From assembly GCF_947568905.1 (NCBI RefSeq), contig NC_079172.1, forward strand, positions 67,828,001 to 67,892,000: 64,000 nt of DNA. Direction: 5' to 3'. Positions within the stretch are counted from its first letter, which is position 1. Every line of letters begins with the position of its first letter. The position numbers and the translations under genes were made by a program. Source of the DNA: Ostrea edulis (Eukaryota). This document shows, piece after piece, positions 48,901-61,339 of this stretch. Below the pieces are notes generated by a model, which ran no database searches, had not been told where the DNA came from, and saw only the letters and a list, made by a program, of their open reading frames with translations.

Positions 48901-51900
48901 TTGCATCCAAGTTTCATTTCAAAATATTGATTCAGACCAAATGACTTCCAATAATGACAATATGGGAAGTCAAAGGTGTTCACTGCTTTGCACTTGGGGG
49001 GGGGGGGGGGGGGGGGGGGGGGGGGGGGGGGGGCAATCACAGGCACAGATTTAAAACAAATAAAAATAGATGTGATACACCATCAATCATGGTCCAGGTT
49101 TCAGTCAGCATGACAATCTGGCTTTGCGAGTTTAATTGACACCACAGTATGCTCCGTACCACATGTCAGAAATTCGGCACTACACCCACTCATTATCGCT
49201 AGCATGTTGTCTTTTCTTACCAGTAATGCAGTTTACCGATATTGATAACATCTAAGCACAGTTTAATCGAGTTGTTAAATAAAATTTTTTTTTTTTTTTT
49301 TTTTTACACTTTTGATATGTTTGGTTTTTAAACTGAAATAAAAGACTGAACATTTGAATCAAATGCACACATCAATACTTCGCCACAAGTTACGTCCCTT
49401 GTCTGCTATTTTGTGGTGAAAAAGGTCTTATTTCTCTATGTTGGCCTTTGTAATTTTCTAATCTATAATTTTGGCATAATGTTATTTTTTCATTAATTGC
49501 ATTCAACTACAATAATGCCCTAGGGTGGGAAAACCCATAAACTTCTATGGAATCTTAATAATTAGCTATAATTCCGCGTTGTAACGTCCTATTACATCGG
49601 GTAGAGTAAAGAAGGAAGACTAGCTATTCACCGATTGACATTTGGCTGACTCTACAAAGGGGAACATTATGATTAAAGTTAGTAGTTGATAGGTTAAAAA
49701 ATTTCCGACAACAAAGTTTTTCACTTGGCCATGTGAAAGTTTACATGTATACAAAGGGCTAGTGAGATACAATTTAATGTCCATCCCTGAGGGGCTGGGA
49801 TGACCCCGGGGCACTTGCCAATCAAAATACTTTAGTTAATACATCTTGATATGTGCAGCAGGAATTTATATATAGTTCTGGGGTCAGGACCTCAATTGTT
49901 TTAAATATATTTCAACAATCATAAATATGGTTTGGGATAACCCCAGGGCCTTTGCCCAACAGAATACTCATTTGCATCTTGCAATATGCAGCAAGAAAAT
50001 ATGTGGTAAAGGGTATGTTATGTGGTAATCATTGTCGCTTCTTTGCTTAATTTACACAAGAAAGACGGAGAGTATATATCTAAAGACAAACACTTGTGAG
50101 TGTGTATTACTGTCTTATGATTGCATCCAGTTTTGATCCTAGTAGAGTTTGTTCTGAGATATATGTTGACTTGTAATCTGAGAAGGATTGCACAAGCCCC
50201 ATCCCCAGGAGAGGGGGTGTTCTCATCTGCATCCTCAAAAATAAAATTCCCTTAAATAAGAAATGGGTACTAGTGACATTTAAACCTTTGATAAAAACCC
50301 TGCATTTACTAATTTGAAGTTTAACCTGTGGGGTAAACTTTTCAAACACCACTGATCACGCACACCATCTTACTCGATGAAGACACACACCAGCACTTGG
50401 CAGATTATTTTCCTGACAATCCTACAGAGAGACTTACGCCTTTCCTATCCTTAACAAAGTAACAGCCGCTCGTCCCTTTAGCACTGAGCTCTGGCCGTAC
50501 ACCAGTGGCTATAGCCATCTCAGATTCCCACACTATCCCCTGATAGTCCATGTCCCGAGGGAAATAATTTCCGTACTGCGTCTCATACTGCAAGCTGTCC
50601 GTGGGACACACCGCTCCGTGAGGCGGAGACTCCTCTTTTTCCACAATCTGAATTTCATCACAGTCCGTCATCTTCCAATGCTGCAGCACTCTAACATGTA
50701 TATATACTAATCAGTGGTGAAAGGATGGTTTAATGTTCAACTTGCATCTATGAAGATGTGCAATAGTTAAATATTTGTTGTTAATATCAGTTTCCTCTGG
50801 CTGTAAGTTATCCTCTCATCACGACATGTATGTAGTTCCGGTGGATAGTAACAGCATACTCACAGGATGTAGAAGATTCGGCGGGAGCAGAATTTTTCTA
50901 CTTTCGCTTTCAGTTGATACGTGGACATGTTTTTCTTTTCACATTGATTGGGCAAGGAATTCAAGATCTTTAGGTCATCTGTCAAAAAGTCGTGTGACAC
51001 AAGCAGCACTGTTTAAAATGGTGACATGCAACGTAACAATTACGAAGTCTATTTGTTTTTCTATCCTGAATCTGATATATCCGGTACATCCCTGACGTAG
51101 CACTTCCGTATTAATCTACTATCTTGGTGCAGATGATCTAAATTGTCACTTGTTTCCTTTTTTGCATCGATGTCACCACGAGCACACGTTATTGACGTGG
51201 CCTCGAAATGTAAGGGAGATTACTCTAATAAGCCATTTTTCTCTCTCTTGGGGTCGTCTCAAAATTGGAAAAACTCTGATATTTTTTTTTTTATTCTGAG
51301 GGATGTGGAAAAAATAACATGTAGACCTAGACAGAGACGTAAACCCTGTCATTTACGTCTCTGGTAATACACAAAATAATAAGGGGGGGGGGGTATGTTT
51401 TTCCCACTGAAAGCTGTTTGTGGTGGTTCTATGCATTTGAATGGATCAGAGAAAAACAAAAAATAAGTGTGGTTTCGGTGTTGTTATCTGGGGCCAATCC
51501 AAAAATATTTCAAACGAGAGTGGGAGTGTTGCAACCTAAGTTTGAACACCTCCCCCCCCCCCCCCCCCCCCCCCCCCCCCCCCCCTCCCCCCACTGGGAA
51601 GGGGGGGGGGAATTGAAGACCCCAAACAGGTCATTTTTTTTGGAAAATCTTCAACCAAGGAGGGAGAGAGGGGGAGTTGCAACCCCCATATCCCCTCTTA
51701 ATCCACCTATTTATTTACATACCACCACATCCCCTCTCAACCCACCTATAACCTACATGTATTTATTTACATACCACCATATCCCCTCTCAACCCACCTA
51801 TAACATATTTATTTACATACTACCATACCCCCTCCCAAAACACCCATAATCTATATTACATAAGTATTCACCCATAATCAATATATTTACATAATTATCC

Positions 51901-60900: not shown

Positions 60901-61339
60901 TCAATGAAGCTTTAAGATATGGAAATTGGAAAGAGGGTGCGGGTAAGAATTGGTTTATAGCATCAATAGAGGTCCACCCATGTATTGTATACCTGAACTT
61001 GGATCAAAGTCCGGGAAGTTTTTCTATATCTAATGGAATAAGTTTTAATACCTTTTCTCTGTCCTTCACAAAATAGCTCCCACTGGAACCCTGGTATATT
61101 CGCTCAGGTAAAACACCTTCTTCTATGGATTCTTCAGCATTCCGGATTATCTCCTGAAAAACCGGGTCATCCGGGAAATTGTTGTCAAACTGTCCATATT
61201 CGTGTTCTACCCTGGGAGCTAAGAGAGGCGAGTTTTCTTCGTTTCCTCTCCCAGTTCGGGTAGGAGAGCGAGGTAGATAGTCGGATCTGTTGAGATTGGG
61301 AGCGAAAGTTACGTCCGGCGGAGGAGGAGCATTAGACAT
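39913..61339 (-). CDS. PI4K2: Phosphatidylinositol 4-kinase type II, isoform using distal first exon A
   Basis: Exons (minus strand): 61339-61052, 48775-48575, 47196-47065, 46149-45996, 44224-44157, 42930-42831, 42698-42565, 40977-40918, 40077-39913. All are GT-AG and phase-consistent. Motifs: [24 protein letters not shown], palmitoylation [36 protein letters not shown]-terminal PFFSWC*. Confidence 0.95.
41320..42375 (+). mobile_element. Degenerate Tc1/mariner transposase in a PI4K2 intron
   Basis: Broken frames read [30 protein letters not shown]...DNVWLKIK and [17 protein letters not shown]. Confidence 0.75.
43300..44030. repeat. 60-bp minisatellite (with a 52-bp variant), about 13 copies, intronic
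   Basis: Unit actgctttatactcaatactagagaccaa[a/g]ctgacagaatct(ccacatct)ctacagagag. Confidence 0.95.
46165..46645. repeat. ~23-28-bp minisatellite abutting a PI4K2 splice acceptor
   Basis: Unit catcatgtgacacaaacactgaattata with short variants, roughly 17 copies. Confidence 0.92.
48245..48605. repeat. 36-bp minisatellite overlapping the end of a PI4K2 exon and its donor
   Basis: Unit tttagtatttggtagtactatattgagctgtcttac, about 9 copies. The terminal copy is the exon end plus GTAAGA. Confidence 0.92.
50438..50671 (-). CDS. PI4K2: Alternative first coding exon B of PI4K2 (diverged duplicate of exon A)
   Basis: MTDCDE...[47 protein letters not shown] ends at a phase-0 GTAAGT donor (50437), compatible with the phase-0 acceptor at 48775. 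Confidence 0.82.
50864..51250 (-). promoter_or_regulatory. Putative internal promoter and non-coding leader exon for PI4K2 exon B, with ISRE-like site
   Basis: Perfect GTGAGT donor at 50863, AACTGAAAGCGAAAGT at 50915-50900, a locally CpG-richer stretch, and TGACGT and CGGAAGT motifs at about 51090-51200. Confidence 0.5.
53009..55507 (+). mobile_element. 5'-truncated I-group (RNase H-bearing) non-LTR retrotransposon, disrupted
   Basis: RT ([43 protein letters not shown]), RNase H ([25 protein letters not shown]), CCHC knuckle (CPCGE...HILQTC), (GAA)n tail, and 10-bp TSD accaaatata at 52999-53008 and 55508-55517. Confidence 0.88.
55515..55780. repeat. Composite minisatellite (ctccttagtaaccaatgataca / ctccttagtgacagaagata units)
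   Basis: Alternating units are visible; related units resume at about 56705-56840. Confidence 0.85.
56290..56703 (-). mobile_element. HINE/Helentron-like MITE with two internal repeats
   Basis: GACG/GACA microsatellite, terminal hairpin-like cccccaaacttcgtttgcggagggt, and a duplicated internal block (cgtaacttc...actgttaaaatatttcaatgaaaatag). Confidence 0.55.
58241..59017 (-). mobile_element. Non-autonomous Helentron-type element (HINE) with 3-4 internal ~167-bp satellite units
   Basis: aacaagaggcccatgggccacatcgctcacctg at one end and ctcacttgagctaaaa at the other, with tandem gatttttcctatatatttgtatgtaaaactttgatcccc units between. Confidence 0.78.
60063..60365. repeat. 60-bp minisatellite x5 in PI4K2 intron 1
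   Basis: Unit gactatcacagaaaattgtgttgggaacacttccccatcagtgagatctctctaaaacgt. Confidence 0.95.

Follow-up and report, generated by a model that had tools for sequence, protein, structure and literature searches.

Can one gene supply two type II phosphatidylinositol 4-kinases (PI4Ks) that differ in the loop that holds the nucleotide? The phosphatidylinositol 4-phosphate (PI4P) pool of the Golgi and the endosomes is produced by type II PI4Ks, and the question is raised by the PI4K2 gene in a 64,000-nucleotide (nt) stretch of the Ostrea edulis genome (NC_079172.1, positions 67,828,001 to 67,892,000; hereafter the window). For this gene a sequence-only reading had proposed two homologous first coding exons, called 1A and 1B here, that exchange the glycine-rich nucleotide-binding loop. 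Our analyses support this proposal; both exons are open, start with an ATG and match PI4K2A/2B. It is very probable that an ancient duplication of the first exon gave rise to two alternative first exons, and with them to two PI4K2 isoforms, A and B, from one gene. This is carried by the exon structure, by both splice junctions in RNA-derived contigs, by purifying selection on exon 1B, and by conservation of the arrangement in bivalves and gastropods.

All coordinates are window positions, the gene lies on the minus strand, and the window contains runs of N at 22443-22585 and 31462-31589. The positions of exons 3-9 come from an alignment of the window with a full-length mollusc PI4K2 protein, together with the splice sites read there. 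Exons 2-9 span 48775 to 39913 with every intron being GT-AG, and the full exon set is 63-85% identical to the PI4K2 of Pomacea. The 895-Mb genome holds one copy of PI4K2, with full-length PI4K2 protein matches confined to this locus, which agrees with the earlier statement that the downstream exons exist only once. When the same genome was searched in six frames with exon 1B, a single other match came up, exon 1A (45% identity over 52 amino acids (aa), E 2.4e-5); as the sole other match in the genome, it places the likeness of 1A and 1B far above chance. The lone locus and the one downstream exon set thus point to one gene with two homologous first exons. A gap-free alignment of the 1A and 1B peptides covers their last 46-52 residues, of which 45-48% are identical. 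Counted from the glycine-rich loop, both exons stop at the same codon, each with a phase-0 GT donor, exactly as had been read from the letters. The spacing previously put at about 10.4 kb measures 10,380 nt between the end of exon 1A and the ATG of exon 1B. The predicted isoforms A and B are about 433 and 415 aa long, and have the C-terminal 337 aa in common, including the catalytic lysine, the CCPCC motif, the catalytic loop and the activation loop.

Are both first exons used? The sequence-only reading had named two junctions, 61052-48775 and 50438-48775, and both are found in contigs of public sequencing runs. Contigs of four such runs (X7, X1, X2 and X8) were aligned to window positions 48575-51400. 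The informative runs, which come from two studies in all, are X7 (same organism, 99+% identity) and X1 and X2 (close relative, ~97% identity). In each of these three, one contig joins 50438 directly to 48775, skipping 1662 nt bounded by CT..AC as read on the plus strand, hence by GT..AG in the direction of the gene. A second contig in each of them reaches 48775/48777 and carries an overhang of 30+ letters that matches the 3' end of exon 1A and differs from 61054-61083 at a single, synonymous position. The presence of both joints means that exon 2 is entered from either 1A or 1B. In addition, the intron between 1B and exon 2 is mostly at zero depth in X7, X1 and X2. A few short pieces do fall inside it (approximately 49384-49520 and 49881-50127), but these are 90-95% matches running into unlike sequence, as dispersed repeats do. 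The contig that contains exon 2 extends 2-3 kb past this exon. Taken together, the spliced joints, the near-empty intron and the extension of the exon-2 contig beyond the exon indicate that the material behaves as RNA. The contigs are assembled and RNA-like by behaviour, so that true 5' ends, expression levels and rare forms lie beyond their resolution. Going by the depth of the junction contigs, which is a poor measure and gives rough values only, exon 1B accounts for ~36%, ~14% and ~45% of both forms in X7, X1 and X2, respectively. By this rough measure, the exon 1B form is more than a trace form.

The same contigs bear on how exon 1B comes to be used. They are collinear with the genome and extend unbroken through 50681 up to 51072-51195 in the three runs, ending at 51193 in X7 and at 51195 in X2, where Illumina adapter follows; these ends lie on an initiator-like TCA. 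Since the contig runs uninterrupted through 50681 to 51193-51195, exon 1B looks like a true first exon. To judge from the contig ends, it probably has an internal promoter or start site of its own near 51193-51195. Neither a tandem joint from 1A to 1B nor a loose end at the in-frame CAG acceptor at 50681 was seen in the contigs of X7, X1 and X2. Exons 1A and 1B appear to be alternative first exons, probably with alternative promoters, and not mutually exclusive cassette exons of the classical kind. The 5' leader of exon 1B contains 11 upstream ATGs with short open reading frames (ORFs).

Run X8, which is from the same organism, was rejected as expression evidence: it is DNA-like, with an unspliced contig across the 1B donor and zero coverage of exon 2. 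One of its contigs departs from the window sequence at 50681, 10 nt before the 1B ATG. This was also considered as a splice event and rejected, as the overhanging letters belong to a dispersed repeat of which the genome has at least 18 copies; the breakpoint would reflect a transposon insertion polymorphism or a mis-join in the assembly graph. Two further features were observed near the inferred start. A putative element resembling an interferon-stimulated response element at 50864-50915 sits within the transcribed 1B leader, about 280-330 nt downstream of the contig starts (51193-51195), and a long poly-G/poly-C run occupies 51600-51650, about 400 nt upstream of the inferred start of the 1B transcript.

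Exon 1B carries the marks of constraint. Its nucleotide identity to three other oysters is 0.74-0.76, compared with 0.54-0.62 for the 150-nt flanks on each side and 0.555 for shuffled sequence. The ratio of nonsynonymous to synonymous rates (dN/dS) was 0.107-0.118 in pairs with unsaturated dS, 0.145 against the close relative, and 0.05-0.15 over the pairs. As dS, calculated according to Nei-Gojobori, reaches saturation when the window is compared with the more distant oysters, we relied on the less diverged pairs. Between the window and an oyster-like contig (L012), dN is 0.174 for exon 1B, 0.044 for exon 1A and 0.010 for exon 2. A higher dN than in 1A combined with a low dN/dS indicates that exon 1B evolves faster than 1A and is clearly constrained. 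Besides, ORFs resembling 1B occur in many other assemblies, in which the conservation ends at the donor and is lost at once in the intronic read-through, and in every relative examined the frame is open and both the ATG and the donor are conserved. Judged by these comparisons, exon 1B is under purifying selection. The suggestion of an old duplication kept by selection thereby held up, given a dN/dS of about 0.1, a layout found in both bivalves and gastropods, and an intact exon 1B in relatives.

Table 1. Exons of the window's PI4K2 gene, in window positions; a slash marks the exon-intron boundary.
Feature	Position	Strand	Details
Exon 1A, coding part	61052..61339	-	96 codons from ATG; donor AAG/GTATTA; EENSPLL acidic dileucine motif; canonical type II PI4K N-terminus and glycine-rich loop
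Exon 1B, 5' leader	50672..51195	-	~522 nt; extent from RNA-like contig ends
Exon 1B, coding part	50438..50671	-	78 codons from ATG; donor GGC/GTAAGT; variant glycine-rich loop
Exon 2, shared	48575..48775	-	67 aa; acceptor TTTACAG/, donor AAA/GTAAGA; KIIGVFKPK (catalytic lysine), CCPCC palmitoylation motif
Exon 3, shared	47065..47196	-	protein alignment and splice sites
Exon 4, shared	45996..46149	-	protein alignment and splice sites
Exon 5, shared	44157..44224	-	DRGNDNWL catalytic loop
Exon 6, shared	42831..42930	-	activation-loop start (AIDNG)
Exon 7, shared	42565..42698	-	protein alignment and splice sites
Exon 8, shared	40918..40977	-	protein alignment and splice sites
Exon 9, shared, coding part to TGA stop	39913..40077	-	protein end APFFSWC; protein alignment and splice sites

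To which family do the products belong, and what does the exchange of the first exon alter? Exon 2 matches the Pfam family PF00454 (PI3_PI4_kinase) with E 2.5e-8, exceeding the gathering score. Neither exon 1A nor exon 1B alone gave a match in Pfam, each being too short and situated upstream of the core of the model. In the PDB, both exons match chains of human PI4K2A/2B (4hnd, 4pla and 4wtv), exon 1A with E 2e-12 and exon 1B with E 2e-5. Isoform A has the canonical loop R-I-x-Q-G-S-S-G-S-Y-F. Isoform B keeps G133, S135, G136, Y138 and F139 of this loop, and carries L129, S130, K132, T134 and C137 in place of the canonical residues. Residues are numbered as in human PI4KIIalpha, with V150 and K152 in VFKPK as anchors; K152 is the catalytic lysine of the human enzyme, for which the role of the CCPCC palmitoylation motif has been described as well (PMC3974213). 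By its sequence, isoform B is a member of the type II PI4K family with a variant loop.

The five substitutions are not peculiar to the window. Among 31 B-type sequences, R129 is replaced by Leu in all 31, I130 by Ser in 30, Q132 by Lys or Arg in 29, S134 by Thr in 27, and S137 by Cys in 30. The A-type sequences, by comparison, retain R129, I130, Q132, S134 and S137 in 24-26 of 26, and G133, S135, G136, Y138 and F139 are invariant in both types. The glycine-rich loop has been called highly conserved among PI4KIIs, and in human PI4KIIalpha the beta-phosphate of ADP is hydrogen-bonded by Ser134 and Ser137, Ile130 is part of the lining of the adenine pocket, and Arg129 contacts the membrane, with R129A markedly lowering activity (PMC3974213). 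As the class-defining sites map to ADP and membrane contacts of the human enzyme, the exon swap alters those residues, and the alteration is fixed and conserved. The N-terminal portions differ too. A-type N-termini carry an acidic dileucine motif, E-x-x-P-L-L, whereas the B-type exons are without this ExxPLL adaptor motif. Close to the N-terminus of 23 of the 31 B-type sequences we find D-x-[IV]-x-I-[IVL]-x-[KR], which is DEIQIVEK in the window.

The arrangement extends beyond the window. The order A, B, exon 2 occurs in four other loci (L012, L010, L023 and L024), each with homologous first exons that have a start codon and a donor of the same phase, as in the window. The oyster-like L012 shares 92% identity with the window in A, 67% in B and 98.5% in exon 2. 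In the gastropod Elysia marginata (BMAT01009626.1, L010:3262-15237), the A-type and B-type exons are both open, and the public model GFS10075.1 joins the B-type exon to exon 2. L024 (positions 1851-10627, ERZ26695794) has three open first exons above one exon 2, two of them A-type with PLL motifs and one B-type; all three end in GTAAGT at the same codon, and exon 2 follows just 180 nt past the B exon. Magallana gigas, the closest named relative found, has the B-type exon in a 93-aa "uncharacterized protein", with ~75% identity at exon 1B, and a B-type exon is also present in Plakobranchus ocellatus. In Pomacea canaliculata, RefSeq lists isoforms X1 (XP_025093217.1, A-type, 457 aa) and X2 (XP_025093218.1, B-type, 441 aa), which are identical from KIIGVFKPK onward. 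As an observation on annotation, the PI4K2 of Elysia marginata is split across three models: the A exon is in a 195-aa model, B together with exons 2-3 is in a 241-aa model with a non-homologous end, and the remaining kinase is in a third.

A tree of the exon cores separates 26 A-type sequences from 27 B-type and one B-like sequence with split support 95/89; it was built on 52 columns and is poorly resolved inside the A and B groups. For the window, L012 and Elysia alike, the A exon groups with the A-type sequences and the B exon with the B-type sequences. This sorting by type rather than by species places the duplication before the bivalve-gastropod split. The B-type class is at least that old, and its distribution may be wider.

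We propose the following course of events. In the distant past the first coding exon would have been duplicated in tandem, leaving two homologous first exons. Both have an ATG, and 1B also has a 5' leader and probably a promoter to itself. Each exon would be spliced independently to the same exon 2, yielding two proteins that are predicted to differ in the N-terminal tail, in the first elements of the amino-terminal lobe (N-lobe) of the kinase and in the glycine-rich nucleotide-binding loop. Isoform A would be the canonical enzyme with the ExxPLL adaptor motif, and isoform B would combine the same catalytic core with a different loop chemistry and a different N-terminal signal. The earlier idea of one gene making two kinases with different N-lobes holds at the level of transcript and selection. 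Isoform B is presumably translated and active, and would differ from isoform A in nucleotide handling or membrane contact, owing to residues 129, 130, 134 and 137, as well as in adaptor-dependent sorting. The difference in ATP/adenosine sensitivity or in redox control that the sequence-only reading had suggested is likewise conjectural; PI 4-kinase activity that adenosine inhibits is a trait of the type II family.

A further-reaching idea may be offered tentatively, and we regard it as possible rather than likely. The B-type exon might define a second ancient class of type II PI4K, in which the reworked loop (L129, S130, K132, T134, C137) confers a different nucleotide affinity or selectivity, or thiol/redox sensitivity, while the N-terminal motif D-x-[IV]-x-I-[IVL] directs the enzyme to a different compartment. 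In B-type sequences a near-invariant Cys takes the place of the beta-phosphate-binding Ser137, and a Ser that of the adenine-pocket Ile130. If this were true, molluscs would own a regulated pair of PI4P-producing enzymes from one gene.

Several points weigh against two functional isoforms from alternative first exons. Isoform B is known at the level of transcript and selection only. The RNA case rests on assembled contigs, so a minor 1A-1B-2 tandem form using the in-frame CAG acceptor at 50681 may exist, and the junction contigs hold just 30 nt on the exon-2 side. The 11 upstream ATGs in the 522-nt leader could limit translation of isoform B. The named species with supporting sequences beyond the window number four, and the N-terminal B motif was defined after viewing the sequences, which makes it a lead and not a test. 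Besides, no full-length B-type protein other than the query was retrieved from a set of 5.8 billion proteins with residues 1-100 of the Elysia protein (P0016) or residues 1-105 of the Pomacea protein (P0076) as queries. This null result is probably a clustering artefact: it is uninformative because the set displays cluster representatives, and the Pomacea isoform is hidden in a cluster represented by a 127-aa ORF.

Three other explanations have to be weighed against this background. The one with the most to recommend it, although we hold it to be unlikely, accepts the 1B transcript as real and conserved and takes isoform B to be a weak or inactive kinase, which would serve in scaffolding, would compete for, e.g., membrane sites or partners, or would be translated under special conditions through control by upstream ORFs. 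It draws on the sites of the class changes, four out of five of which have documented roles in the human enzyme (R129, I130, S134 and S137; PMC3974213), on the upstream ATGs of the leader, and on the nonsynonymous rate, which is about 4 times that of exon 1A (dN 0.174 vs 0.044). Other features of the loop count against this explanation. Both of its glycines, S135, Y138 and F139 are invariant in the B-type, the exchange of S134 for Thr preserves the hydroxyl group, and the changed residues are near-invariant across the B exons of bivalves and gastropods, a pattern more in keeping with a specific working loop than with relaxation. Every downstream catalytic residue is moreover common to isoform A.

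The second explanation is that 1A is spliced to the CAG acceptor at 50681, so that one protein with a duplicated N-lobe segment is made. We consider it very improbable and largely refuted. There is indeed a phase-0, acceptor-like CTGCAG/CAT 10 nt upstream of the 1B ATG and in frame with it, but the 1B contig crosses this position unbroken in three RNA-like runs with no joint reported there, exon 1A is seen joined straight to exon 2, and the Pomacea RefSeq models carry A or B, never both. The concern that the two exons might always be spliced in tandem is accordingly met by the direct joint from 1A to exon 2. The third explanation takes exon 1B for a decaying relic of a partial duplication that is transcribed as noise. 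Exon 1B does lie further than 1A from canonical PI4K2, as its weaker PDB match attests. Its open frame, with ATG and donor conserved in all relatives examined, is at odds with decay, as are the low dN/dS next to flanks at random identity, its occurrence in bivalves and gastropods, and its precise splicing to exon 2 at appreciable contig depth. The relic explanation is therefore refuted, and we assign it next to no probability.

We return to the two isoforms made from alternative first exons, and to what is known of such systems. The literature searched yielded no publication on type II PI4Ks with alternative first exons or with a variant glycine-rich loop. The earlier remark that the arrangement is undescribed stands in this sense, but not for databases: the Pomacea canaliculata isoforms X1/X2 show the same A-type/B-type first-exon arrangement as the window gene. 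This gastropod orthologue is present as a pipeline annotation, and no description or functional study of it was found in the literature searched.

The vertebrate PI4K2A/PI4K2B pair likewise comprises two type II PI4Ks with a conserved core that differ mainly in the N-terminal region. This pair arose by gene duplication, and other animals have been reported as single-copy for PI4KII (PMC3024228). The molluscs would thus have gained their diversity through exon duplication in a single-copy gene, in contrast to the gene duplication of the vertebrates. The N-terminal dileucine motifs of the vertebrate enzymes act through AP-3 via L61/L62 (alpha) and through AP-1 via L29/L30 (beta) (PMC9524207), and the ExxPLL motif of exon 1A is of the same kind as these adaptor motifs. 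Both vertebrate proteins retain QGSSGSYF, whereas the mollusc isoform B alters the loop. By analogy, we surmise that the mollusc isoform pair is a functional parallel of the vertebrate alpha/beta split.

The general design of variable first exons is already well known. In UGT1A and the clustered protocadherins, homologous first exons lie in tandem; each has a promoter and a start codon to itself and is spliced singly to the common exons, and the variable exon encodes part of a functional domain. The PI4K2 gene is alike in design, although it has only two members (three in L024), and the variable exon encodes the nucleotide-binding loop of a kinase instead of a substrate- or ligand-binding domain.

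On this reading, molluscs diversify PI4K2 within one gene by exchanging the N-terminal sorting region together with ADP-contact residues, and both versions have been retained since before the bivalve-gastropod split, which makes for a clean case of exon duplication in place of the vertebrate gene duplication. Isoform B is in effect a natural five-residue "mutant" of the ATP-binding loop (positions 129, 130, 132, 134 and 137) whose changes could be introduced into human PI4K2A. PI4K2 is mis-annotated wherever a gene model merges, splits or omits exon 1B, e.g. in Elysia and Magallana gigas.

A minor observation concerns the other end of exon 2. A tandem array of a 36-bp unit, with 9 copies and 92% matches, occupies 48254-48588 and begins within the last 14 nt of this exon, and it multiplies the 5' splice site of exon 2 (ACTAAA/GTAAGA) through intron 2. 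In another species (L011:4643-5060), a larger segment of the exon-2 tail is present in three repeats at the same place as the 36-bp array of the window.

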